The notes beneath the pieces were generated by a model. It saw nothing but the letters and a program-made list of their open reading frames with translations, ran no database searches and was not told the origin of the DNA. A stretch of 15,075 nt of DNA from Azolla caroliniana (lineage: Eukaryota > Plantae > Polypodiophyta), in contig JBHGNT010000819.1 in the NCBI GenBank assembly GCA_043228905.1, forward strand, positions 1 through 15,075. The letters run 5' to 3'. Shown one piece after another: positions 1-15,075 of the stretch; position 1 is the first letter of the stretch; every line of letters begins with the position of its first letter. Position numbers and translations under genes: made by a program.

Positions 1-12
1 CGTCGCTTCTAA
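1..12 (+). CDS. 3' end (RRF-stop) of an upstream copy of the 2S albumin-like gene, cut by the window edge
   Basis: CGTCGCTTCTAA matches the last codons of the other copies and is followed by the same 3' flank. Confidence 0.85.
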   Translation, partial: RRF

Positions 13-495
13 ATAGTACATAAACCTTGTTCAAATTATTCTCGTGGTCTCTCTCTAATTTCTCGTAAGTGTTTACGAACAAGTGCGTAAACGTAAACAC
101 GAGCACCAACGTCCCTCCAACACGAACGTAAACACGAGCACCAACGCATAGAATTTGCCTATAGGGACCGCAAACCACCCAAACGGAAAAAAAAACATCA
201 AAGCAGGACACCCATACCGCACACGCCACGGCAACGGCTAAGGCTAAGGTCAACTTGTACACGCGGCGAATGTGAACTTGCTTCCACACTTGCCCGATAG
301 GACACTCCTAGTGTGGTAGTCCGGTTAGCTTTCCTTGTCGTCGTCGTTACCAACCCCTCGTCCGTCCGAACGAGCGAGTACGGACACCGGTCTATCTACG
401 TTCATCGATGTAGCACACTCGGGAGCCACCACTCGTCCCCGCAGTAGCCTCCGCGTGCTTAGTGTCTCGGCACTAGCGCGTTCTAGTTTAATGTG

Positions 496-789
496 CACGT
501 GCCCGCACACCCCTACGCGCACGCGCGAGTGCGCACATTTACCTATGTATGTATAAATGTTATGTTGCTCGACAAGCTCTCGCGCGAGGAGGAGGAGTAC
601 CCGCTACAGGTTGCGCCCAGATTGTCTGGTGACAATACGACACCTAGGACTAGCCTAGACGTGTGGGAGGGTGGACTAGTTGGTATGGGTCTTGGGCAAG
701 AGTTGTACGCAGGACACACACGTTATGGTAATGGGAGTGGTGAGTGACATGCATGTGCTCTGATTGCATGGCCATGTGTATATATTAAA
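496..789 (+). promoter_or_regulatory. Seed/spore-maturation-type promoter, copy 1 (G-box, ACGT cores, RY elements, TATA)
   Basis: CACGTG at 496-501; ACGTGT at 659-664 and on the minus strand at 718-723; CATGCATG at 748-755; TGCATG at 765-770; TATATATTAAA at 779-789, 77 nt before the ATG. RY plus G-box is the established B3 (ABI3/FUS3/LEC2) plus bZIP module of storage-protein promoters. Confidence 0.75.
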
Positions 790-855
790 GGTGGAGGGAG
801 CAATGTCAATACAATCCATTAGGAGACAAGCACCGGGATCATAAGGACAATCGCA

Positions 856-1616
856 ATGGCAAAGCTTACTTCCGTATTCCTCATGGCCGTGATCATGCTC
901 GCCGCGTGTACCGCGGCCAATGCTAGGTCTGTAGGGCGGGACCGTGAAGAGGAGCGACGCGATCGACGTCGTGAGGGAGACATTGACGAGGAGAGGCGCG
1001 ATCGACGCCGAGAGGGGGAGTGCGATGACGAGAGGCGCGAGCGACGTCGTGAGGGGTTCCTTGAGGAGGGGCGCCGCTACAGAGACAACAAGAGAGACTC
1101 CGAAGAGGAAAGGGAACGTCGTAGCCGTGGTCGCGATGAGCCACGTGACGAGGAACTGAGGCGAGAGTGCGGTGATTTCATCGACAAGCAGATCCGAGAG
1201 CTACAAGAGCGCTCCGAAAGAGAGGAAGGTGAACAAGGACGTCGCTCCCCATGGATCGAAAACACTCGATACTCAACGTCGAACGAATCCCCGCCGAAGA
1301 TCGATGCGATCGCCTACGTGATGCCTTGTATGCTGACGAGGAGGAACGACGCAATGATGAAGGCCGACGCCATGGCCAACAATCAAGGGAACACCGTAGC
1401 TGGGAGGAAGAGGACGAGGAGCGCGAGAGAGATAGCAGCCGTGAGCGACGAGAGGGTGACGAACGCCGCCACCGCATGTCTCGACGACAAGAGGACGAAC
1501 GTCAACAACGTCGCCAATTCAAGGCCGATGACGAGGAAAGAGCTCTAGGCGTCGCCGCCTCCCGCCTACTCCAACAGTGCGATCTTCGCCCTCGTGCTTG
1601 TATTCGTCGCTTCTAA
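856..1616 (+). pseudogene. Frameshifted copy 1 of the 2S albumin-like gene (25-bp deletion)
   Basis: GACCCTCGGAACGGTGCTGCAGGAA is missing at ~1276. This removes the CC motif and shifts the frame, so the ORF ends at 1548 while the normal stop is at 1614-1616. A sequencing or assembly error is possible. Confidence 0.8.
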
Positions 1617-1715
1617 ATAGTACATAAACCTTGTTCAAATTATTCTCGTGGTCTCTCTCTAATTTCTCGTAAGTGTTTACGAACAAGTGCGTCTCCCCAA
1701 TCGCGCATTACACCC

Positions 1716-1777
1716 ACACGAACGTAAACACGAGCACCAACGTCCCTCCAACACGAACGTAAACACGAGCACCAACG
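1716..1777 (+). repeat. 27-bp perfect direct repeat x2 in the 3' flank (present in each unit; first repeat truncated in the leftmost unit)
   Basis: ACACGAACGTAAACACGAGCACCAACG at 1716-1742 and 1751-1777, separated by TCCCTCCA. Confidence 0.95.
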
Positions 1778-2125
1778 CATAGAATTTGCCTATAGGGACC
1801 GCAAACCACCCAAACGGAAAAAAAAACATCAAAGCAGGACACCCATACCGCACACGCCACGGCAACGGCTAAGGCTAAGGTCAACTTGTACACGCGGCGA
1901 ATGTGAACTTGCTTCCACACTTGCCCGATAGGACACTCCTAGTGTGGTAGTCCGGTTAGCTTTCCTTGTCGTCGTCGTTACCAACCCCTCGTCCGTCCGA
2001 ACGAGCGAGTACGGACACCGGTCTATCTACGTTCATCGATGTAGCACACTCGGGAGCCACCACTCGTCCCGCAGTAGCCTCCGCGTGCTTAGTGTCTCGG
2101 CACTAGCGCGTTCTAGTTTAATGTG

Positions 2126-2419
2126 CACGTGCCCGCACACCCCTACGCGCACGCGCGAGTGCGCACATTTACCTATGTATGTATAAATGTTATGTTGCTC
2201 GACAAGCTCTCGCGCGAGGAGGAGGAGTACCCGCTACAGGTTGCGCCCAGATTGTCTGGTGACAATACGACACCTAGGACTAGCCTAGACGTGTGGGAGG
2301 GTGGACTAGTTGGTATGGGTCTTGGGCAAGAGTTGTACGCAGGACACACACGTTATGGTAATGGGAGTGGTGAGTGACATGCATGTGCTCTGATTGCATG
2401 GCCATGTGTATATATTAAA
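2126..2419 (+). promoter_or_regulatory. RY/G-box/TATA promoter, copy 2
   Basis: Same motifs and spacing as copy 1 (G-box 2126, RY 2378-2385, TATA 2409-2419). Confidence 0.75.
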
Positions 2420-2485
2420 GGTGGAGGGAGCAATGTCAATACAATCCATTAGGAGACAAGCACCGGGATCATAAGGACAATCGCA

Positions 2486-3271
2486 ATGGCAAAGCTTACT
2501 TCCGTATTCCTCATGGCCGTGATCATGCTCGCCGCGTGTACCGCGGCCAATGCTAGGTCTGTAGGGCGGGACCGTGAAGAGGAGCGACGCGATCGACGTC
2601 GTGAGGGAGACATTGACGAGGAGAGGCGCGATCGACGCCGAGAGGGGGAGTGCGATGACGAGAGGCGCGAGCGACGTCGTGAGGGGTTCCTTGAGGAGGG
2701 GCGCCGCTACAGAGACAACAAGAGAGACTCCGAAGAGGAAAGGGAACGTCGTAGCCGTGGTCGCGATGAGCCACGTGACGAGGAACTGAGGCGAGAGTGC
2801 GGTGATTTCATCGACAAGCAGATCCGAGAGCTACAAGAGCGCTCCGAAAGAGAGGAAGGTGAACAAGGACGTCGCTCCCCATGGATCGAAAACACTCGAT
2901 ACTCAAGACCCTCGGAACGGTGCTGCAGGAACGTCGAACGAATCCCCGCCGAAGATCGATGCGATCGCCTACGTGATGCCTTGTATGCTGACGAGGAGGA
3001 ACGACGCAATGATGAAGGCCGACGCCATGGCCAACAATCAAGGGAACACCGTAGCTGGGAGGAAGAGGACGAGGAGCGCGAGAGAGATAGCAGCCGTGAG
3101 CGACGAGAGGGTGACGAACGCCGCCACCGCATGTCTCGACGACAAGAGGACGAACGTCAACAACGTCGCCAATTCAAGGCCGATGACGAGGAAAGAGCTC
3201 TAGGCGTCGCCGCCTCCCGCCTACTCCAACAGTGCGATCTTCGCCCTCGTGCTTGTATTCGTCGCTTCTAA
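2486..3271 (+). CDS. Secreted Arg/Glu-rich 2S albumin-like storage protein (prolamin superfamily), copy 2, 261 aa
   Basis: Hydrophobic signal peptide MAKLTSVFLMAVIMLAACTAANA with a probable A-N-A cleavage site. Albumin-like blocks LRRECGDFI, PSERCCRNVERIPAEDRCDRL and AASRLLQQCDLRPRAC. Start context gcaATGGC; intronless; RY/TATA promoter upstream. Confidence 0.85.
   Translation: MAKLTSVFLMAVIMLAACTAANARSVGRDREEERRDRRREGDIDEERRDRRREGECDDERRERRREGFLEEGRRYRDNKRDSEEERERRSRGRDEPRDEELRRECGDFIDKQIRELQERSEREEGEQGRRSPWIENTRYSRPSERCCRNVERIPAEDRCDRLRDALYADEEERRNDEGRRHGQQSREHRSWEEEDEERERDSSRERREGDERRHRMSRRQEDERQQRRQFKADDEERALGVAASRLLQQCDLRPRACIRRF
2576..2692 (+). repeat. Three imperfect 39-bp (13-aa) intragenic tandem repeats (present in each CDS copy)
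   Basis: EEERRDRRREGDI / DEERRDRRREGEC / DDERRERRREGFL, aa 31-69. Confidence 0.9.
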
Positions 3272-3780
3272 ATAGTACATAAACCTTGTTCAAATTATTC
3301 TCGTGGTCTCTCTCTAATTTCTCGTAAGTGTTTACGAACAAGTGCGTCTCCCCAATCGCGCATTACACCCACACGAACGTAAACACGAGCACCAACGTCC
3401 CTCCAACACGAACGTAAACACGAGCACCAACGCATAGAATTTGCCTATAGGGACCGCAAACCACCCAAACGGAAAAAAAAACATCAAAGCAGGACACCCA
3501 TACCGCACACGCCACGGCAACGGCTAAGGCTAAGGTCAACTTGTACACGCGGCGAATGTGAACTTGCTTCCACACTTGCCCGATAGGACACTCCTAGTGT
3601 GGTAGTCCGGTTAGCTTTCCTTGTCGTCGTCGTTACCAACCCCTCGTCCGTCCGAACGAGCGAGTACGGACACCGGTCTATCTACGTTCATCGATGTAGC
3701 ACACTCGGGAGCCACCACTCGTCCCGCAGTAGCCTCCGCGTGCTTAGTGTCTCGGCACTAGCGCGTTCTAGTTTAATGTG

Positions 3781-4047
3781 CACGTGCCCGCACACCCCTA
3801 CGCGCACGCGCGAGTGCGCACATTTACCTATGTATGTATAAATGTTATGTTGCTCGACAAGCTCTCGCGCGAGGAGGAGGAGTACCCGCTACAGGTTGCG
3901 CCCAGATTGTCTGGTGACAATACGACACCTAGGACTAGCCTAGACGTGTGGGAGGGTGGACTAGTTGGTATGGGTCTTGGGCAAGAGTTGTACGCAGGAC
4001 ACACACGTTATGGTAATGGGAGTGGTGAACCATGTGTATATATTAAA
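3781..4047 (+). promoter_or_regulatory. Promoter of copy 3, lacking both RY elements
   Basis: GTGACATGCATGTGCTCTGATTGCATGG (28 nt) is replaced by a single A at 4029. The G-box (3781) and TATA (4037-4047) remain. Confidence 0.75.
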
Positions 4048-4113
4048 GGTGGAGGGAGCAATGTCAATACAATCCATTAGGAGACAAGCACCGGGATCAT
4101 AAGGACAATCGCA

Positions 4114-4872
4114 ATGGCAAAGCTTACTTCCGTATTCCTCATGGCCGTGATCATGCTCGCCGCGTGTACCGCGGCCAATGCTAGGTCTGTAGGGCGGGAC
4201 CGTGAAGAGGAGCGACGCGATCGACGTCGTGAGGGAGACATTGACGAGGAGAGGCGCGATCGACGCCGAGAGGGGGAGTGCGATGACGAGAGGCGCGAGC
4301 GACGTCGTGAGGGGTTCCTTGAGGAGGGGCGCCGCTACAGAGACAACAAGAGAGACTCCGAAGAGGAAAGGGAACGTCGTAGCCGTGGTCGCGATGAGCC
4401 ACGTGACGAGGAACTGAGGCGAGAGTGCGGTGATTTCATCGACAAGCAGATCCGAGAGCTACAAGAGCGCTCCGAAAGAGAGGAAGGTGAACAAGGACGT
4501 CGCTCCCCATGGATCGAAAACACTCGATACTCAAGACCCTCGGAACGGTGCTGCAGGAACGTCGAACGAATCCCCGCCGAAGATCGATGCGATCGCCTAC
4601 GTGATGCCTTGTATGCTGACGAGGAGGAACGACGCAATGATGAAGGCCGACGCCATGGCCAACAATCAAGGGAACACCGTAGCTGGGAGGAAGAGGACGA
4701 GGAGCGCGAGAGAGATAGCAGCCGCCACCGCATGTCTCGACGACAAGAGGACGAACGTCAACAACGTCGCCAATTCAAGGCCGATGACGAGGAAAGAGCT
4801 CTAGGCGTCGCCGCCTCCCGCCTACTCCAACAGTGCGATCTTCGCCCTCGTGCTTGTATTCGTCGCTTCTAA
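4114..4872 (+). CDS. 2S albumin-like storage protein, copy 3, 252 aa (9-aa in-frame deletion)
   Basis: Same translation as the other copies except a 27-bp in-frame loss at ~4721-4724 (SSRERREGDERRHR becomes SSRHR). Confidence 0.8.
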   Translation: MAKLTSVFLMAVIMLAACTAANARSVGRDREEERRDRRREGDIDEERRDRRREGECDDERRERRREGFLEEGRRYRDNKRDSEEERERRSRGRDEPRDEELRRECGDFIDKQIRELQERSEREEGEQGRRSPWIENTRYSRPSERCCRNVERIPAEDRCDRLRDALYADEEERRNDEGRRHGQQSREHRSWEEEDEERERDSSRHRMSRRQEDERQQRRQFKADDEERALGVAASRLLQQCDLRPRACIRRF

Positions 4873-5381
4873 ATAGTACATAAACCTTGTTCAAATTATT
4901 CTCGTGGTCTCTCTCTAATTTCTCGTAAGTGTTTACGAACAAGTGCGTCTCCCCAATCGCGCATTACACCCACACGAACGTAAACACGAGCACCAACGTC
5001 CCTCCAACACGAACGTAAACACGAGCACCAACGCATAGAATTTGCCTATAGGGACCGCAAACCACCCAAACGGAAAAAAAAACATCAAAGCAGGACACCC
5101 ATACCGCACACGCCACGGCAACGGCTAAGGCTAAGGTCAACTTGTACACGCGGCGAATGTGAACTTGCTTCCACACTTGCCCGATAGGACACTCCTAGTG
5201 TGGTAGTCCGGTTAGCTTTCCTTGTCGTCGTCGTTACCAACCCCTCGTCCGTCCGAACGAGCGAGTACGGACACCGGTCTATCTACGTTCATCGATGTAG
5301 CACACTCGGGAGCCACCACTCGTCCCGCAGTAGCCTCCGCGTGCTTAGTGTCTCGGCACTAGCGCGTTCTAGTTTAATGTG

Positions 5382-5675
5382 CACGTGCCCGCACACCCCT
5401 ACGCGCACGCGCGAGTGCGCACATTTACCTATGTATGTATAAATGTTATGTTGCTCGACAAGCTCTCGCGCGAGGAGGAGGAGTACCCGCTACAGGTTGC
5501 GCCCAGATTGTCTGGTGACAATACGACACCTAGGACTAGCCTAGACGTGTGGGAGGGTGGACTAGTTGGTATGGGTCTTGGGCAAGAGTTGTACGCAGGA
5601 CACACACGTTATGGTAATGGGAGTGGTGAGTGACATGCATGTGCTCTGATTGCATGGCCATGTGTATATATTAAA
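5382..5675 (+). promoter_or_regulatory. RY/G-box/TATA promoter, copy 4
   Basis: Same motifs and spacing as copy 1. Confidence 0.75.
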
Positions 5676-5741
5676 GGTGGAGGGAGCAATGTCAATACAA
5701 TCCATTAGGAGACAAGCACCGGGATCATAAGGACAATCGCA

Positions 5742-6527
5742 ATGGCAAAGCTTACTTCCGTATTCCTCATGGCCGTGATCATGCTCGCCGCGTGTACCGC
5801 GGCCAATGCTAGGTCTGTAGGGCGGGACCGTGAAGAGGAGCGACGCGATCGACGTCGTGAGGGAGACATTGACGAGGAGAGGCGCGATCGACGCCGAGAG
5901 GGGGAGTGCGATGACGAGAGGCGCGAGCGACGTCGTGAGGGGTTCCTTGAGGAGGGGCGCCGCTACAGAGACAACAAGAGAGACTCCGAAGAGGAAAGGG
6001 AACGTCGTAGCCGTGGTCGCGATGAGCCACGTGACGAGGAACTGAGGCGAGAGTGCGGTGATTTCATCGACAAGCAGATCCGAGAGCTACAAGAGCGCTC
6101 CGAAAGAGAGGAAGGTGAACAAGGACGTCGCTCCCCATGGATCGAAAACACTCGATACTCAAGACCCTCGGAACGGTGCTGCAGGAACGTCGAACGAATC
6201 CCCGCCGAAGATCGATGCGATCGCCTACGTGATGCCTTGTATGCTGACGAGGAGGAACGACGCAATGATGAAGGCCGACGCCATGGCCAACAATCAAGGG
6301 AACACCGTAGCTGGGAGGAAGAGGACGAGGAGCGCGAGAGAGATAGCAGCCGTGAGCGACGAGAGGGTGACGAACGCCGCCACCGCATGTCTCGACGACA
6401 AGAGGACGAACGTCAACAACGTCGCCAATTCAAGGCCGATGACGAGGAAAGAGCTCTAGGCGTCGCCGCCTCCCGCCTACTCCAACAGTGCGATCTTCGC
6501 CCTCGTGCTTGTATTCGTCGCTTCTAA
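5742..6527 (+). CDS. 2S albumin-like storage protein, copy 4, 261 aa
   Basis: Translation identical to copy 2. Confidence 0.85.
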   Translation: MAKLTSVFLMAVIMLAACTAANARSVGRDREEERRDRRREGDIDEERRDRRREGECDDERRERRREGFLEEGRRYRDNKRDSEEERERRSRGRDEPRDEELRRECGDFIDKQIRELQERSEREEGEQGRRSPWIENTRYSRPSERCCRNVERIPAEDRCDRLRDALYADEEERRNDEGRRHGQQSREHRSWEEEDEERERDSSRERREGDERRHRMSRRQEDERQQRRQFKADDEERALGVAASRLLQQCDLRPRACIRRF

Positions 6528-7036
6528 ATAGTACATAAACCTTGTTCAAATTATTCTCGTGGTCTCTCTCTAATTTCTCGTAAGTGTTTACGAACAAGTG
6601 CGTCTCCCCAATCGCGCATTACACCCACACGAACGTAAACACGAGCACCAACGTCCCTCCAACACGAACGTAAACACGAGCACCAACGCATAGAATTTGC
6701 CTATAGGGACCGCAAACCACCCAAACGGAAAAAAAAACATCAAAGCAGGACACCCATACCGCACACGCCACGGCAACGGCTAAGGCTAAGGTCAACTTGT
6801 ACACGCGGCGAATGTGAACTTGCTTCCACACTTGCCCGATAGGACACTCCTAGTGTGGTAGTCCGGTTAGCTTTCCTTGTCGTCGTCGTTACCAACCCCT
6901 CGTCCGTCCGAACGAGCGAGTACGGACACCGGTCTATCTACGTTCATCGATGTAGCACACTCGGGAGCCACCACTCGTCCCGCAGTAGCCTCCGCGTGCT
7001 TAGTGTCTCGGCACTAGCGCGTTCTAGTTTAATGTG

Positions 7037-7330
7037 CACGTGCCCGCACACCCCTACGCGCACGCGCGAGTGCGCACATTTACCTATGTATGTATAAATG
7101 TTATGTTGCTCGACAAGCTCTCGCGCGAGGAGGAGGAGTACCCGCTACAGGTTGCGCCCAGATTGTCTGGTGACAATACGACACGTAGGACTAGCCTAGA
7201 CGTGTGGGAGGGTGGACTAGTTGGTATGGGTCTTGGGCAAGAGTTGTACGCAGGACACACACGTTATGGTAATGGGAGTGGTGAGTGACATGCATGTGCT
7301 CTGATTGCATGGCCATGTGTATATATTAAA
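7037..7330 (+). promoter_or_regulatory. RY/G-box/TATA promoter, copy 5, with an extra ABRE created by a SNP
   Basis: Same motifs as copy 1. C>G at 7185 gives GACACGTA (TACGTGTC on the minus strand, 7180-7187). Confidence 0.75.
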
Positions 7331-7396
7331 GGTGGAGGGAGCAATGTCAATACAATCCATTAGGAGACAAGCACCGGGATCATAAGGACAATCGCA

Positions 7397-8182
7397 ATGG
7401 CAAAGCTTACTTCCGTATTCCTCATGGCCGTGATCATGCTCGCCGCGTGTACCGCGGCCAATGCTAGGTCTGTAGGGCGGGACCGTGAAGAGGAGCGACG
7501 CGATCGACGTCGTGAGGGAGACATTGACGAGGAGAGGCGCGATCGACGCCGAGAGGGGGAGTGCGATGACGAGAGGCGCGAGCGACGTCGTGAGGGGTTC
7601 CTTGAGGAGGGGCGCCGCTACAGAGACAACAAGAGAGACTCCGAAGAGGAAAGGGAACGTCGTAGCCGTGGTCGCGATGAGCCACGTGACGAGGAACTGA
7701 GGCGAGAGTGCGGTGATTTCATCGACAAGCAGATCCGAGAGCTACAAGAGCGCTCCGAAAGAGAGGAAGGTGAACAAGGACGTCGCTCCCCATGGATCGA
7801 AAACACTCGATACTCAAGACCCTCGGAACGGTGCTGCAGGAACGTCGAACGAATCCCCGCCGAAGATCGATGCGATCGCCTACGTGATGCCTTGTATGCT
7901 GACGAGGAGGAACGACGCAATGATGAAGGCCGACGCCATGGCCAACAATCAAGGGAACACCGTAGCTGGGAGGAAGAGGACGAGGAGCGCGAGAGAGATA
8001 GCAGCCGTGAGCGACGAGAGGGTGACGAACGCCGCCACCGCATGTCTCGACGACAAGAGGACGAACGTCAACAACGTCGCCAATTCAAGGCCGATGACGA
8101 GGAAAGAGCTCTAGGCGTCGCCGCCTCCCGCCTACTCCAACAGTGCGATCTTCGCCCTCGTGCTTGTATTCGTCGCTTCTAA
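7397..8182 (+). CDS. 2S albumin-like storage protein, copy 5, 261 aa
   Basis: Translation identical to copy 2. Confidence 0.85.
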   Translation: MAKLTSVFLMAVIMLAACTAANARSVGRDREEERRDRRREGDIDEERRDRRREGECDDERRERRREGFLEEGRRYRDNKRDSEEERERRSRGRDEPRDEELRRECGDFIDKQIRELQERSEREEGEQGRRSPWIENTRYSRPSERCCRNVERIPAEDRCDRLRDALYADEEERRNDEGRRHGQQSREHRSWEEEDEERERDSSRERREGDERRHRMSRRQEDERQQRRQFKADDEERALGVAASRLLQQCDLRPRACIRRF

Positions 8183-8691
8183 ATAGTACATAAACCTTGT
8201 TCAAATTATTCTCGTGGTCTCTCTCTAATTTCTCGTAAGTGTTTACGAACAAGTGCGTCTCCCCAATCGCGCATTACACCCACACGAACGTAAACACGAG
8301 CACCAACGTCCCTCCAACACGAACGTAAACACGAGCACCAACGCATAGAATTTGCCTATAGGGACCGCAAACCACCCAAACGGAAAAAAAAACATCAAAG
8401 CAGGACACCCATACCGCACACGCCACGGCAACGGCTAAGGCTAAGGTCAACTTGTACACGCGGCGAATGTGAACTTGCTTCCACACTTGCCCGATAGGAC
8501 ACTCCTAGTGTGGTAGTCCGGTTAGCTTTCCTTGTCGTCGTCGTTACCAACCCCTCGTCCGTCCGAACGAGCGAGTACGGACACCGGTCTATCTACGTTC
8601 ATCGATGTAGCACACTCGGGAGCCACCACTCGTCCCGCAGTAGCCTCCGCGTGCTTAGTGTCTCGGCACTAGCGCGTTCTAGTTTAATGTG

Positions 8692-8985
8692 CACGTGCCC
8701 GCACACCCCTACGCGCACGCGCGAGTGCGCACATTTACCTATGTATGTATAAATGTTATGTTGCTCGACAAGCTCTCGCGCGAGGAGGAGGAGTACCCGC
8801 TACAGGTTGCGCCCAGATTGTCTGGTGACAATACGACACCTAGGACTAGCCTAGACGTGTGGGAGGGTGGACTAGTTGGTATGGGTCTTGGGCAAGAGTT
8901 GTACGCAGGACACACACGTTATGGTAATGGGAGTGGTGAGTGACATGCATGTGCTCTGATTGCATGGCCATGTGTATATATTAAA
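8692..8985 (+). promoter_or_regulatory. RY/G-box/TATA promoter, copy 6
   Basis: Same motifs and spacing as copy 1. Confidence 0.75.
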
Positions 8986-9051
8986 GGTGGAGGGAGCAAT
9001 GTCAATACAATCCATTAGGAGACAAGCACCGGGATCATAAGGACAATCGCA

Positions 9052-9837
9052 ATGGCAAAGCTTACTTCCGTATTCCTCATGGCCGTGATCATGCTCGCCG
9101 CGTGTACCGCGGCCAATGCTAGGTCTGTAGGGCGGGACCGTGAAGAGGAGCGACGCGATCGACGTCGTGAGGGAGACATTGACGAGGAGAGGCGCGATCG
9201 ACGCCGAGAGGGGGAGTGCGATGACGAGAGGCGCGAGCGACGTCGTGAGGGGTTCCTTGAGGAGGGGCGCCGCTACAGAGACAACAAGAGAGACTCCGAA
9301 GAGGAAAGGGAACGTCGTAGCCGTGGTCGCGATGAGCCACGTGACGAGGAACTGAGGCGAGAGTGCGGTGATTTCATCGACAAGCAGATCCGAGAGCTAC
9401 AAGAGCGCTCCGAAAGAGAGGAAGGTGAACAAGGACGTCGCTCCCCATGGATCGAAAACACTCGATACTCAAGACCCTCGGAACGGTGCTGCAGGAACGT
9501 CGAACGAATCCCCGCCGAAGATCGATGCGATCGCCTACGTGATGCCTTGTATGCTGACGAGGAGGAACGACGCAATGATGAAGGCCGACGCCATGGCCAA
9601 CAATCAAGGGAACACCGTAGCTGGGAGGAAGAGGACGAGGAGCGCGAGAGAGATAGCAGCCGTGAGCGACGAGAGGGTGACGAACGCCGCCACCGCATGT
9701 CTCGACGACAAGAGGACGAACGTCAACAACGTCGCCAATTCAAGGCCGATGACGAGGAAAGAGCTCTAGGCGTCGCCGCCTCCCGCCTACTCCAACAGTG
9801 CGATCTTCGCCCTCGTGCTTGTATTCGTCGCTTCTAA
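9052..9837 (+). CDS. 2S albumin-like storage protein, copy 6, 261 aa
   Basis: Translation identical to copy 2. Confidence 0.85.
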   Translation: MAKLTSVFLMAVIMLAACTAANARSVGRDREEERRDRRREGDIDEERRDRRREGECDDERRERRREGFLEEGRRYRDNKRDSEEERERRSRGRDEPRDEELRRECGDFIDKQIRELQERSEREEGEQGRRSPWIENTRYSRPSERCCRNVERIPAEDRCDRLRDALYADEEERRNDEGRRHGQQSREHRSWEEEDEERERDSSRERREGDERRHRMSRRQEDERQQRRQFKADDEERALGVAASRLLQQCDLRPRACIRRF

Positions 9838-10346
9838 ATAGTACATAAACCTTGTTCAAATTATTCTCGTGGTCTCTCTCTAATTTCTCGTAAGTGTTTA
9901 CGAACAAGTGCGTCTCCCCAATCGCGCATTACACCCACACGAACGTAAACACGAGCACCAACGTCCCTCCAACACGAACGTAAACACGAGCACCAACGCA
10001 TAGAATTTGCCTATAGGGACCGCAAACCACCCAAACGGAAAAAAAAACATCAAAGCAGGACACCCATACCGCACACGCCACGGCAACGGCTAAGGCTAAG
10101 GTCAACTTGTACACGCGGCGAATGTGAACTTGCTTCCACACTTGCCCGATAGGACACTCCTAGTGTGGTAGTCCGGTTAGCTTTCCTTGTCGTCGTCGTT
10201 ACCAACCCCTCGTCCGTCCGAACGAGCGAGTACGGACACCGGTCTATCTACGTTCATCGATGTAGCACACTCGGGAGCCACCACTCGTCCCGCAGTAGCC
10301 TCCGCGTGCTTAGTGTCTCGGCACTAGCGCGTTCTAGTTTAATGTG

Positions 10347-10640
10347 CACGTGCCCGCACACCCCTACGCGCACGCGCGAGTGCGCACATTTACCTATGTA
10401 TGTATAAATGTTATGTTGCTCGACAAGCTCTCGCGCGAGGAGGAGGAGTACCCGCTACAGGTTGCGCCCAGATTGTCTGGTGACAATACGACACCTAGGA
10501 CTAGCCTAGACGTGTGGGAGGGTGGACTAGTTGGTATGGGTCTTGGGCAAGAGTTGTACGCAGGACACACACGTTATGGTAATGGGAGTGGTGAGTGACA
10601 TGCATGTGCTCTGATTGCATGGCCATGTGTATATATTAAA
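10347..10640 (+). promoter_or_regulatory. RY/G-box/TATA promoter, copy 7
   Basis: Same motifs and spacing as copy 1. Confidence 0.75.
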
Positions 10641-10706
10641 GGTGGAGGGAGCAATGTCAATACAATCCATTAGGAGACAAGCACCGGGATCATAAGGACA
10701 ATCGCA

Positions 10707-11492
10707 ATGGCAAAGCTTACTTCCGTATTCCTCATGGCCGTGATCATGCTCGCCGCGTGTACCGCGGCCAATGCTAGGTCTGTAGGGCGGGACCGTGAAG
10801 AGGAGCGACGCGATCGACGTCGTGAGGGAGACATTGACGAGGAGAGGCGCGATCGACGCCGAGAGGGGGAGTGCGATGACGAGAGGCGCGAGCGACGTCG
10901 TGAGGGGTTCCTTGAGGAGGGGCGCCGCTACAGAGACAACAAGAGAGACTCCGAAGAGGAAAGGGAACGTCGTAGCCGTGGTCGCGATGAGCCACGTGAC
11001 GAGGAACTGAGGCGAGAGTGCGGTGATTTCATCGACAAGCAGATCCGAGAGCTACAAGAGCGCTCCGAAAGAGAGGAAGGTGAACAAGGACGTCGCTCCC
11101 CATGGATCGAAAACACTCGATACTCAAGACCCTCGGAACGGTGCTGCAGGAACGTCGAACGAATCCCCGCCGAAGATCGATGCGATCGCCTACGTGATGC
11201 CTTGTATGCTGACGAGGAGGAACGACGCAATGATGAAGGCCGACGCCATGGCCAACAATCAAGGGAACACCGTAGCTGGGAGGAAGAGGACGAGGAGCGC
11301 GAGAGAGATAGCAGCCGTGAGCGACGAGAGGGTGACGAACGCCGCCACCGCATGTCTCGACGACAAGAGGACGAACGTCAACAACGTCGCCAATTCAAGG
11401 CCGATGACGAGGAAAGAGCTCTAGGCGTCGCCGCCTCCCGCCTACTCCAACAGTGCGATCTTCGCCCTCGTGCTTGTATTCGTCGCTTCTAA
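10707..11492 (+). CDS. 2S albumin-like storage protein, copy 7, 261 aa
   Basis: Translation identical to copy 2. Confidence 0.85.
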   Translation: MAKLTSVFLMAVIMLAACTAANARSVGRDREEERRDRRREGDIDEERRDRRREGECDDERRERRREGFLEEGRRYRDNKRDSEEERERRSRGRDEPRDEELRRECGDFIDKQIRELQERSEREEGEQGRRSPWIENTRYSRPSERCCRNVERIPAEDRCDRLRDALYADEEERRNDEGRRHGQQSREHRSWEEEDEERERDSSRERREGDERRHRMSRRQEDERQQRRQFKADDEERALGVAASRLLQQCDLRPRACIRRF

Positions 11493-12001
11493 ATAGTACA
11501 TAAACCTTGTTCAAATTATTCTCGTGGTCTCTCTCTAATTTCTCGTAAGTGTTTACGAACAAGTGCGTCTCCCCAATCGCGCATTACACCCACACGAACG
11601 TAAACACGAGCACCAACGTCCCTCCAACACGAACGTAAACACGAGCACCAACGCATAGAATTTGCCTATAGGGACCGCAAACCACCCAAACGGAAAAAAA
11701 AACATCAAAGCAGGACACCCATACCGCACACGCCACGGCAACGGCTAAGGCTAAGGTCAACTTGTACACGCGGCGAATGTGAACTTGCTTCCACACTTGC
11801 CCGATAGGACACTCCTAGTGTGGTAGTCCGGTTAGCTTTCCTTGTCGTCGTCGTTACCAACCCCTCGTCCGTCCGAACGAGCGAGTACGGACACCGGTCT
11901 ATCTACGTTCATCGATGTAGCACACTCGGGAGCCACCACTCGTCCCGCAGTAGCCTCCGCGTGCTTAGTGTCTCGGCACTAGCGCGTTCTAGTTTAATGT
12001 G

Positions 12002-12295
12002 CACGTGCCCGCACACCCCTACGCGCACGCGCGAGTGCGCACATTTACCTATGTATGTATAAATGTTATGTTGCTCGACAAGCTCTCGCGCGAGGAGGAG
12101 GAGTACCCGCTACAGGTTGCGCCCAGATTGTCTGGTGACAATACGACACCTAGGACTAGCCTAGACGTGTGGGAGGGTGGACTAGTTGGTATGGGTCTTG
12201 GGCAAGAGTTGTACGCAGGACACACACGTTATGGTAATGGGAGTGGTGAGTGACATGCATGTGCTCTGATTGCATGGCCATGTGTATATATTAAA
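12002..12295 (+). promoter_or_regulatory. RY/G-box/TATA promoter, copy 8
   Basis: Same motifs and spacing as copy 1. Confidence 0.75.
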
Positions 12296-12361
12296 GGTGG
12301 AGGGAGCAATGTCAATACAATCCATTAGGAGACAAGCACCGGGATCATAAGGACAATCGCA

Positions 12362-13147
12362 ATGGCAAAGCTTACTTCCGTATTCCTCATGGCCGTGATC
12401 ATGCTCGCCGCGTGTACCGCGGCCAATGCTAGGTCTGTAGGGCGGGACCGTGAAGAGGAGCGACGCGATCGACGTCGTGAGGGAGACATTGACGAGGAGA
12501 GGCGCGATCGACGCCGAGAGGGGGAGTGCGATGACGAGAGGCGCGAGCGACGTCGTGAGGGGTTCCTTGAGGAGGGGCGCCGCTACAGAGACAACAAGAG
12601 AGACTCCGAAGAGGAAAGGGAACGTCGTAGCCGTGGTCGCGATGAGCCACGTGACGAGGAACTGAGGCGAGAGTGCGGTGATTTCATCGACAAGCAGATC
12701 CGAGAGCTACAAGAGCGCTCCGAAAGAGAGGAAGGTGAACAAGGACGTCGCTCCCCATGGATCGAAAACACTCGATACTCAAGACCCTCGGAACGGTGCT
12801 GCAGGAACGTCGAACGAATCCCCGCCGAAGATCGATGCGATCGCCTACGTGATGCCTTGTATGCTGACGAGGAGGAACGACGCAATGATGAAGGCCGACG
12901 CCATGGCCAACAATCAAGGGAACACCGTAGCTGGGAGGAAGAGGACGAGGAGCGCGAGAGAGATAGCAGCCGTGAGCGACGAGAGGGTGACGAACGCCGC
13001 CACCGCATGTCTCGACGACAAGAGGACGAACGTCAACAACGTCGCCAATTCAAGGCCGATGACGAGGAAAGAGCTCTAGGCGTCGCCGCCTCCCGCCTAC
13101 TCCAACAGTGCGATCTTCGCCCTCGTGCTTGTATTCGTCGCTTCTAA
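12362..13147 (+). CDS. 2S albumin-like storage protein, copy 8, 261 aa
   Basis: Translation identical to copy 2. Confidence 0.85.
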   Translation: MAKLTSVFLMAVIMLAACTAANARSVGRDREEERRDRRREGDIDEERRDRRREGECDDERRERRREGFLEEGRRYRDNKRDSEEERERRSRGRDEPRDEELRRECGDFIDKQIRELQERSEREEGEQGRRSPWIENTRYSRPSERCCRNVERIPAEDRCDRLRDALYADEEERRNDEGRRHGQQSREHRSWEEEDEERERDSSRERREGDERRHRMSRRQEDERQQRRQFKADDEERALGVAASRLLQQCDLRPRACIRRF

Positions 13148-13656
13148 ATAGTACATAAACCTTGTTCAAATTATTCTCGTGGTCTCTCTCTAATTTCTCG
13201 TAAGTGTTTACGAACAAGTGCGTCTCCCCAATCGCGCATTACACCCACACGAACGTAAACACGAGCACCAACGTCCCTCCAACACGAACGTAAACACGAG
13301 CACCAACGCATAGAATTTGCCTATAGGGACCGCAAACCACCCAAACGGAAAAAAAAACATCAAAGCAGGACACCCATACCGCACACGCCACGGCAACGGC
13401 TAAGGCTAAGGTCAACTTGTACACGCGGCGAATGTGAACTTGCTTCCACACTTGCCCGATAGGACACTCCTAGTGTGGTAGTCCGGTTAGCTTTCCTTGT
13501 CGTCGTCGTTACCAACCCCTCGTCCGTCCGAACGAGCGAGTACGGACACCGGTCTATCTACGTTCATCGATGTAGCACACTCGGGAGCCACCACTCGTCC
13601 CGCAGTAGCCTCCGCGTGCTTAGTGTCTCGGCACTAGCGCGTTCTAGTTTAATGTG

Positions 13657-13950
13657 CACGTGCCCGCACACCCCTACGCGCACGCGCGAGTGCGCACATT
13701 TACCTATGTATGTATAAATGTTATGTTGCTCGACAAGCTCTCGCGCGAGGAGGAGGAGTACCCGCTACAGGTTGCGCCCAGATTGTCTGGTGACAATACG
13801 ACACCTAGGACTAGCCTAGACGTGTGGGAGGGTGGACTAGTTGGTATGGGTCTTGGGCAAGAGTTGTACGCAGGACACACACGTTATGGTAATGGGAGTG
13901 GTGAGTGACATGCATGTGCTCTGATTGCATGGCCATGTGTATATATTAAA
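13657..13950 (+). promoter_or_regulatory. RY/G-box/TATA promoter, copy 9
   Basis: Same motifs and spacing as copy 1. Confidence 0.75.
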
Positions 13951-14016
13951 GGTGGAGGGAGCAATGTCAATACAATCCATTAGGAGACAAGCACCGGGAT
14001 CATAAGGACAATCGCA

Positions 14017-14802
14017 ATGGCAAAGCTTACTTCCGTATTCCTCATGGCCGTGATCATGCTCGCCGCGTGTACCGCGGCCAATGCTAGGTCTGTAGGGCGG
14101 GACCGTGAAGAGGAGCGACGCGATCGACGTCGTGAGGGAGACATTGACGAGGAGAGGCGCGATCGACGCCGAGAGGGGGAGTGCGATGACGAGAGGCGCG
14201 AGCGACGTCGTGAGGGGTTCCTTGAGGAGGGGCGCCGCTACAGAGACAACAAGAGAGACTCCGAAGAGGAAAGGGAACGTCGTAGCCGTGGTCGCGATGA
14301 GCCACGTGACGAGGAACTGAGGCGAGAGTGCGGTGATTTCATCGACAAGCAGATCCGAGAGCTACAAGAGCGCTCCGAAAGAGAGGAAGGTGAACAAGGA
14401 CGTCGCTCCCCATGGATCGAAAACACTCGATACTCAAGACCCTCGGAACGGTGCTGCAGGAACGTCGAACGAATCCCCGCCGAAGATCGATGCGATCGCC
14501 TACGTGATGCCTTGTATGCTGACGAGGAGGAACGACGCAATGATGAAGGCCGACGCCATGGCCAACAATCAAGGGAACACCGTAGCTGGGAGGAAGAGGA
14601 CGAGGAGCGCGAGAGAGATAGCAGCCGTGAGCGACGAGAGGGTGACGAACGCCGCCACCGCATGTCTCGACGACAAGAGGACGAACGTCAACAACGTCGC
14701 CAATTCAAGGCCGATGACGAGGAAAGAGCTCTAGGCGTCGCCGCCTCCCGCCTACTCCAACAGTGCGATCTTCGCCCTCGTGCTTGTATTCGTCGCTTCT
14801 AA
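14017..14802 (+). CDS. 2S albumin-like storage protein, copy 9, 261 aa
   Basis: Translation identical to copy 2. Confidence 0.85.
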   Translation: MAKLTSVFLMAVIMLAACTAANARSVGRDREEERRDRRREGDIDEERRDRRREGECDDERRERRREGFLEEGRRYRDNKRDSEEERERRSRGRDEPRDEELRRECGDFIDKQIRELQERSEREEGEQGRRSPWIENTRYSRPSERCCRNVERIPAEDRCDRLRDALYADEEERRNDEGRRHGQQSREHRSWEEEDEERERDSSRERREGDERRHRMSRRQEDERQQRRQFKADDEERALGVAASRLLQQCDLRPRACIRRF

Positions 14803-15075
14803 ATAGTACATAAACCTTGTTCAAATTATTCTCGTGGTCTCTCTCTAATTTCTCGTAAGTGTTTACGAACAAGTGCGTCTCCCCAATCGCGCATTACACC
14901 CACACGAACGTAAACACGAGCACCAACGTCCCTCCAACACGAACGTAAACACGAGCACCAACGCATAGAATTTGCCTATAGGGACCGCAAACCACCCAAA
15001 CGGAAAAAAAAACATCAAAGCAGGACACCCATACCGCACACGCCACGGCAACGGCTAAGGCTAAGGTCAACTTGT

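Follow-up and report, generated by a model that had tools for sequence, protein, structure and literature searches.

Tandem arrays whose units are nearly identical, spacers included, are the textbook arrangement of ribosomal RNA (rRNA), 5S and histone genes. We know of no plant reserve-protein array with near-identical units and spacers. To our knowledge, the arrays of alpha-zein, gliadin and Cycas genes consist of diverged copies with different spacers, whereas in the array described here the spacers are identical and the unit measures 1.66 kb. This array fills a 15,075-nt stretch of the fern Azolla caroliniana (assembly GCA_043228905.1, contig JBHGNT010000819.1, positions 1 to 15,075 of the forward strand), which we refer to as the window. 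Each unit carries a gene for a putative arginine-rich relative of the 2S albumins of seeds.

Older biochemical work on 2S-type proteins in fern spores, and matteuccin, a 2.2S spore protein of the ostrich fern, are cited in PMC4973428. A comparative study of 2023 that included Azolla filiculoides stated that plants earlier than gymnosperms have no genes for 2S albumin, 7S or 11S proteins (PMC10006428), which conflicts with the gene family of the array and with the older work on fern spore proteins. Storage proteins are not mentioned in the Azolla/Salvinia genome paper, and literature searches on fern or Azolla storage proteins and on concerted evolution of storage-protein arrays yielded no description of the array. 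From the analysis below we think it more likely than not that the window belongs to a genuine chromosomal array of a functional gene, which would be old, homogenised and expressed from a maturation-type promoter as a high-dosage nitrogen reserve of spores.

Layout of the Array and Variation Between Units

The window holds 9.1 units of 1655 bp arranged head to tail, with nine whole coding sequences (CDSs) and the last 12 nt of a tenth. In a full unit the CDS takes up 786 bp and the spacer 869 bp; the gene is intron-less and no spliced model is needed. The first 30 nt of the open reading frame (ORF) are found nine times, at positions 856, 2486, 4114, 5742, 7397, 9052, 10707, 12362 and 14017. Successive CDS starts are thus spaced by 1630, 1628 and 1628 bp and then five times by 1655 bp. 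Tandem Repeats Finder showed internal repeats of 39, 19 and 18 bp that return every ∼1.63–1.66 kb across the window. As the window opens with the final 12 nt of a CDS and closes within a spacer, the array is open at both edges, and ten units are touched.

The complete list of variants was derived from a MAFFT alignment of all window units. The units starting at 7397, 9052, 10707, 12362 and 14017 are mutually identical over 7,679 nt, and the units of the window show 0–1 differences each. Each of the four leftmost units carries one private deletion of 25–27 bp, two of them in spacers and two in CDSs. The intact 261-aa product is encoded by seven of the nine whole CDSs, while one is frameshifted and one is nine residues shorter and has also lost the RY element of its promoter, taken out by the deletion at 4028|4029 upstream of the CDS at 4114.

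These results agree with a preliminary description of the window as an array of complete units (promoter, CDS and 3′ flank) that runs off both edges with ∼870 bp between CDSs. They also bear out the identity of copies 4–9 apart from one single nucleotide polymorphism (SNP), found in unit 4 at 7185 (MAFFT). The count of at least ten copies given there holds for the units touched but not for whole CDSs, of which there are nine, seven of them fully intact.

The four deletions are near-equal in size (27, 25, 27 and 27 bp) and all come from the same end of the window. A G>A change sits next to two of them, and the flanking microhomology amounts to 0–4 nt only. This spectrum is odd for natural mutation, and the deletions could be end-joining scars or consensus errors near the contig end. 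Another peculiarity is a run of nine A at 8384–8392 and at the equivalent site in all nine units, where short-read contigs of two projects (L005 and L009, see below) read AAAAGAAAA. Either the assembly consensus is wrong in this homopolymer, or this part of the array has a fixed variant here. ORFs of 133–141 aa in other frames overlap each CDS (e.g., 7618–8043 on the minus strand and 7713–8114 on the plus strand). They are Ser/Leu- or Thr/Asn-rich and are by-products of the GAR/CGN codon bias, not separate genes.

Two other reasons for a repeated unit were considered and rejected. Terminal inverted repeats and long direct repeats, looked for as transposon structure, are absent from the unit. 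As for an RNA gene as the reason for the array, searches of the unit with Rfam (E ≤ 1) and ARAGORN gave no match.

The Same Unit in Other Public Assemblies

The exact 261-aa protein is also encoded on two public MEGAHIT contigs, L005 and L006 (ENA ERZ27227308 and ERZ27227309). Each is 1774 bp long, i.e., 1655 + 119 bp, and has identical 119-nt ends lying 1655 bp apart, which is a cyclic assembly path. A de Bruijn assembler with k = 119 gives such ends for a repeat unit that closes on itself. A single base separates L005 from a window unit, and at the SNP position this contig has the majority allele (C).

Using a 29-mer from the CDS we retrieved three further contigs from another ENA series, and a fourth was found by protein look-up. 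The contig L009 has a 1640-bp unit at a depth of 657×, L007 (440×) and L010 (443×) share a unit of 1857 bp in which an ORF of 295 aa is intact, and L008 has a depth of 596×. A 1650-bp version, represented by L003, is present in the JGI samples 3300047530 and 3300047541. Each array variant closes on itself in its own sample, and ORFs are open in five variants (for contigs that are cut, over the parts read). Over the parts read, L009 encodes the window protein but for an in-frame loss of 15 bp, and a single base distinguishes its spacer from that of the window.

The array is genuine and not an assembly artefact, because cyclic contigs of the same unit occur in short-read assemblies of other public samples. 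The k-mer coverage of these contigs (440–657×) suggests many copies, although it is not a copy number, there being no single-copy reference from the same samples.

One could still imagine a single-copy gene, or an extrachromosomal circular DNA, that was written out as a concatemer. A circle fits the cyclic short-read contigs as well as an array does, identical units cannot be reliably counted beyond the read length, and the odd deletions are grouped at one window end. We nevertheless regard this explanation as highly improbable. The unit closes on itself in assemblies of at least three projects made with different assemblers, and the contig depths speak against a concatemer artefact. Moreover, a rolled-out circle is not expected to give unit-private variants in a fixed linear order. 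A rolling-circle or eccDNA-derived origin of the array, raised in the preliminary description, would be equally compatible with the cyclic contigs.

The variants also differ in their repeats. The start of the 3′ flank is duplicated in L003 (655–760) and L007 (1102–1227): L003 and L004 contain a tandem copy of 51 bp, L007 a CT-rich expansion. The CDS insert of L003, L004, L007 and L008 varies in length in repeat steps of 18 and 30 nt.

Divergence Between Arrays

Between the window unit and L003/L004 the CDS has diverged by ∼6%, and the mid-spacer is largely unalignable, with large indels. Synonymous sites differ by ∼15% between array types and spacers by much more. Even so, the 3′ flank, a mid-spacer block (ACGGCTAAGGCTAAGG), a G-box block and the promoter line up colinearly in units of 1640, 1650, 1655 and 1857 bp. 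The conserved islands of the spacer are the start of the 3′ flank, the short mid-spacer block, the G-box block, an ACGTGT block and the last ∼170 bp before the ATG. Complete units of gene and spacer thus follow each other head to tail, with an identity within arrays that is far above the identity between arrays, as in arrays under concerted evolution.

The preliminary description had left the choice between very recent amplification and continuing concerted evolution. Because the CDSs of the array types differ by several percent and their spacers are strongly diverged, yet colinear and uniform within arrays, the comparison favours an old, selected gene array that would have been homogenised by concerted evolution. 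Unequal crossing-over and gene conversion would then keep the units of this old array uniform. The 15-bp CDS deletion of L009, which is part of the consensus unit of its array, appears to be a variant that has spread through an array.

The competing explanation is that a single-copy gene was amplified very recently, lineage by lineage, so that uniformity would reflect youth and not homogenisation. It would account for the complete identity of units 5–9, spacers included, and a different junction could hide in the mid-spacer, where the window type and the L003 type can hardly be aligned. We consider it unlikely, since unit types of 1640–1857 bp from different samples are colinear across several blocks, and since L009 combines a window-like spacer with a CDS deletion in its consensus unit.

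Selection on the Coding Sequence

Differences between the window CDS and L003 were counted by hand, codon by codon, leaving out ∼20 ambiguous columns in repeat regions. We found ∼29 synonymous and ∼14 replacement differences in ∼230 codons. Without selection about three quarters of changes are replacements, i.e., synonymous and replacement changes stand at roughly 1:3. The hand count corresponds to a rough omega of 0.15–0.2. The proteins of the 1650-bp and 1857-bp versions are ∼93–95% identical to the window protein, and all CDS indels between variants are in frame and fall within repeat regions, giving lengths of 261–295 aa. These sequence comparisons show an ORF that evolves under purifying selection.

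This bears on the idea that the unit is a gene-derived satellite, i.e., selfish or structural DNA that has spread and whose ORFs are open merely because the copies are young. Two of the nine copies are indeed already damaged. A satellite would, however, show no selection on coding capacity, whereas here synonymous differences outnumber replacements by ∼2:1 (∼29 against 14) and ORFs are open in five independent variants (in cut contigs, over the parts read). In addition, even a homologue at 44–49% identity retains the six cysteines and the promoter motifs. We give the satellite explanation very little credence.

Encoded Protein and Family Assignment

The 261-aa protein contains 68 Arg, 49 Glu, 25 Asp and 4 Lys, and Arg makes up 29% of its mature chain, whose net charge is close to zero (hand counts). 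A predicted signal peptide is followed by three Arg/Glu-rich repeats and an albumin-like domain (Table 1). The signal-peptide segment is conserved in the predicted protein P0001 and in L003 and L007, and an analogous hydrophobic start is found in L001. The domain shows the motifs CGDFIDKQIRE, SRPSERCCRNVERIPAEDRC and ASRLLQQCDLRPRAC in this order and has a long Arg/Glu-rich insert of variable length between C159 and C250.

Against the Pfam family PF00234 (protease inhibitor/seed storage/LTP), with a curated cut-off of 21.7 bits, the full-length protein scored 21.7 bits (E = 2.5e-4), the domain alone 23.2 bits (E = 8.3e-5) and the 252-aa copy 22.0 bits. The relatives L001, L003 and L004 scored 20.1–20.6 bits, which is below the cut-off, and matched no other family. 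Besides PF00234, the window protein gave only a weak conotoxin match over residues 3–58, i.e., the signal peptide and N-terminal repeats. PDB sequence searches aligned the CC…RC stretch with bifunctional inhibitors of cereals and with a 2S albumin of Moringa, the best E-value being 0.04 with a profile. The canonical CxC reads D-R-C where the ragi inhibitor has C-R-C, the first Cys being replaced by Asp.

Six cysteines (C105, C146, C147, C159, C250 and C257) are conserved throughout the family, down to L001 at 44–49% identity, while C56 is not conserved and is Tyr in L003 and L007. In the disulfide maps of 2S albumins the two cysteines missing here pair with each other, and the loss of one bridge (C1–C5) would therefore be coherent. 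Asn136, which lies in a low-confidence loop before the CC helix, is a candidate chain-processing site.

Foldseek gave no match with E < 1, but 13 of its 15 weak matches belong to the prolamin superfamily (2S albumins, cereal inhibitors and lipid transfer proteins). A wide structure search with VIA was dominated by coiled coils matching the long N-terminal helix. The ESM Atlas contains the sequence, and the clusters nearest to it all carry PF00234, although their scores serve as leads only.

Taken together, the product would be a secreted, charge-balanced and very Arg-rich relative of seed 2S albumins, as suggested by a borderline Pfam match. The earlier naming of the product as a 2S albumin holds at superfamily level, by this match and the cysteine motifs, but with six of the eight cysteines the protein is not a canonical 2S albumin.

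A word search and a full HMMER search of public protein libraries recovered as relatives only P0001, P0002 and a 45-aa fragment, P0003. Hardly any members of the family are found in predicted protein sets. P0001 is a diverged relative encoded on L002 (ENA ERZ1034419, 928 bp, depth 1.5×), with a nearly identical signal peptide and with N-terminal repeats that are longer and rich in cysteine. The ORF called on L002 ends in apparently out-of-frame sequence, and it may represent a paralogue or the version of another species. The more distant homologue on L001 (ENA ERZ27227291, 1491 bp) lies in AT-rich DNA with no sign of a tandem unit on the contig. Its ORF has 267 aa when read from the MMKK start, the signal peptide having been overlooked by the gene caller.

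Promoter Elements

An RY element together with ACGT-core elements beside a TATA box is the classical signature of seed storage-protein promoters, which are bound by B3 factors of the ABI3/FUS3/LEC2 type and by bZIP factors. The promoter of the unit shows this layout (Table 1). The RY element CATGCATG and a second TGCATG sit ∼25–35 bp ahead of the TATA box, with a G-box and ACGTGT further upstream. In the window CATGCATG occurs 8 times against 0.17 expected, and the one missing copy is explained by the 27-bp promoter deletion. An alignment of the proximal region of four variants shows that the last ∼170 bp before the ATG are kept, with CATGCATG, TGCATGG, the TATA box and the leader. The same layout is seen in L001 upstream of the signal peptide, with ACGTGT, GCATG cores and TATAAATA.

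The set of features of a maturation-phase storage-protein promoter, namely RY near TATA plus ACGT-core elements conserved among relatives, is thus found here. We suggest that the promoter is of the maturation type, under putative control of ABI3/LEC2-type B3 and bZIP factors. In one fern, mature sporangia express genes of the ABI3 and LEC2 types (PMC5379062).

Putative Function

The sporocarps of Azolla serve as resting stages and contain nutrient reserves (PMC8386757). With many identical copies and a maturation-type promoter, the array would allow a burst of nitrogen-rich reserve protein in maturing spores or sporocarps. In our reading the array supplies, at high dosage, a nitrogen reserve that would be synthesised as the spores mature, because the protein appears to be secretory and to belong to the storage-albumin superfamily, is extremely rich in Arg with an acidic balance, has a variable insert, and is encoded by identical copies with a maturation-type promoter.

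The main alternative is that the array is functional and its product a defence protein or peptide precursor. It might act against microbes, inhibit an enzyme or release Arg-rich peptides from the three N-terminal repeats. Antifungal activity is established for many 2S albumins. In the PDB the sequence matches best with bifunctional inhibitors of amylase and trypsin and with chitin-binding 2S albumins of Moringa, and the repeated 13-aa Arg-rich modules could be cleaved out. In contrast to cationic antimicrobial peptides, however, the Arg content is offset by Glu and Asp to a net charge of about zero. The hypervariable insert, free in length across variants of 261–295 aa, fits a bulk reserve better than a specific inhibitor, and the RY/G-box promoter suggests a maturation programme. 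We therefore see a defence or inhibitor role as rather improbable, though it deserves more weight than the other alternatives.

Several points weigh against reading the array as an old, homogenised locus for a spore nitrogen reserve. With respect to function, composition and promoter motifs are all that speaks for a role in spores. The family assignment is borderline, with a Pfam score at the cut-off, PDB matches at E ≥ 0.04 and Foldseek matches at E > 1. The eight-cysteine skeleton C…C…CC…CxC…C…C is incomplete, with six of eight cysteines present in the protein. The AF2 models are all-helical but weak, the predicted local distance difference test (pLDDT) score being 70.5 for the full-length protein and 55.4 for the isolated domain.

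With respect to the array, part of the identity of units 5–9 could have been introduced when a repeat was assembled or polished to a consensus; identical units longer than the reads are not countable by an assembler, and polishing can flatten true variation. Contig coverage is uncalibrated, so that depth fixes no copy number for the array. The synonymous and replacement figures are hand counts. Finally, the poor alignment of the mid-spacer between variants leaves a little room for an independent amplification with a different junction.

Table 1. Coordinates of the array units and of the features located within them.
Feature	Position	Strand	Remarks
Partial unit 0	1..855	+	Last 12 nt of CDS plus spacer; 27-bp deletion with adjacent G>A at 88|89; extra C in C-run at ∼437–440
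Unit 1 (1630 bp)	856..2485	+	25-bp deletion at 1274|1275 in CDS, CC motif gone and frame shifted; ORF 856–1548, 230 aa
Unit 2 (1628 bp)	2486..4113	+	CDS 2486–3271 intact, 261 aa; 27-bp deletion in spacer plus G>A at 4028|4029
Unit 3 (1628 bp)	4114..5741	+	CDS 4114–4872; 27-bp in-frame deletion at 4720|4721, 252 aa; flanking GCCG, 4-nt microhomology
Unit 4 (1655 bp)	5742..7396	+	CDS 5742–6527 intact; lone SNP at 7185, G here and C in the other units and public contig L005
Units 5–9	7397..15075	+	CDSs 7397–8182, 9052–9837, 10707–11492, 12362–13147 and 14017–14802 intact; last unit truncated by window end
Predicted signal peptide (reference unit)	7397..7465	+	Residues 1–23; hydrophobic core, A-N-A before R24; assigned by eye only
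Three 39-bp (13-aa) Arg/Glu-rich repeats	7481..7597	+	N-terminal part of protein
Albumin-like domain, C105–C257	7709..8167	+	Cysteines C105, C146–C147, C159, C250 and C257
Two 30-nt direct repeats	8279..8343	+	In 3′ flank; start-to-start distance 35 bp
G-box CACGTG	8692..8697	+	Within block conserved between array variants
ACGTGT (ACGT-core, abscisic acid responsive element-like)	8855..8860	+	Within conserved block
RY element CATGCATG	8944..8951	+	Once per unit, ∼100 bp before ATG; conserved in all array variants
Second TGCATG	8961..8966	+	
TATA box TATATATTAAA	8975..8985	+	67–77 bp upstream of ATG at 9052

Implications and Comparison With Known Systems

A more far-reaching possibility, which we put forward tentatively and hold to be less likely true than false, is that a polymerase II gene is kept in the manner of ribosomal DNA (rDNA). 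Tens to hundreds of copies would be homogenised array-wide across a fern genus and would encode the main Arg-rich nitrogen reserve of the spores in a nitrogen-fixing symbiosis. If this is true, reserves of the 2S-albumin type predate seeds, and such arrays have perhaps been missed by comparative genome studies, being masked as repeats before gene prediction. If the array is expressed in spores, the seed maturation module, i.e., RY/ABI3-type control of a prolamin-superfamily reserve, would likewise predate seeds, and the absence of the array from annotations would be a repeat-masking artefact. As a protein-coding case, the locus also allows a joint study of concerted evolution, purifying selection and dosage, for which public variants of 1640, 1650, 1655 and 1857 bp are at hand.

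Compared with seed 2S albumins (napins, Arabidopsis At2S1-4 and the Arg-rich 2S albumins of conifers), the protein is alike in its signal peptide, in the CC followed by …RC…, in the …C…LRPxAC tail and in its borderline match to PF00234. It also shares with them a hypervariable insert between the third and fourth helices, an intron-less gene and a promoter with RY and ACGT-core elements beside TATA. It differs in having six cysteines instead of eight, with the first Cys of CxC replaced by Asp and one Cys only before CC. It is also about twice the usual size and has 29% Arg with matching Glu/Asp and three extra N-terminal repeats. Clusters of the At2S1-4 type are small and made of diverged paralogues, in contrast to an array of identical units.

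In its arrangement the locus resembles 45S and 5S rDNA and histone repeats. Gene and spacer follow head to tail, units are near-identical within an array including the spacers and differ between the arrays of different samples, and damaged units lie at one side of the stretch. Unlike in those arrays, the unit encodes a secreted protein that looks tissue-specific, has a polymerase II TATA promoter and contains no RNA gene according to Rfam and ARAGORN. With the alpha-zein and gliadin clusters and the tandem array of vicilin-like antimicrobial peptide genes of Cycas (PMC9023351) it has in common that local duplication increases dosage for a protein of the reserve type.

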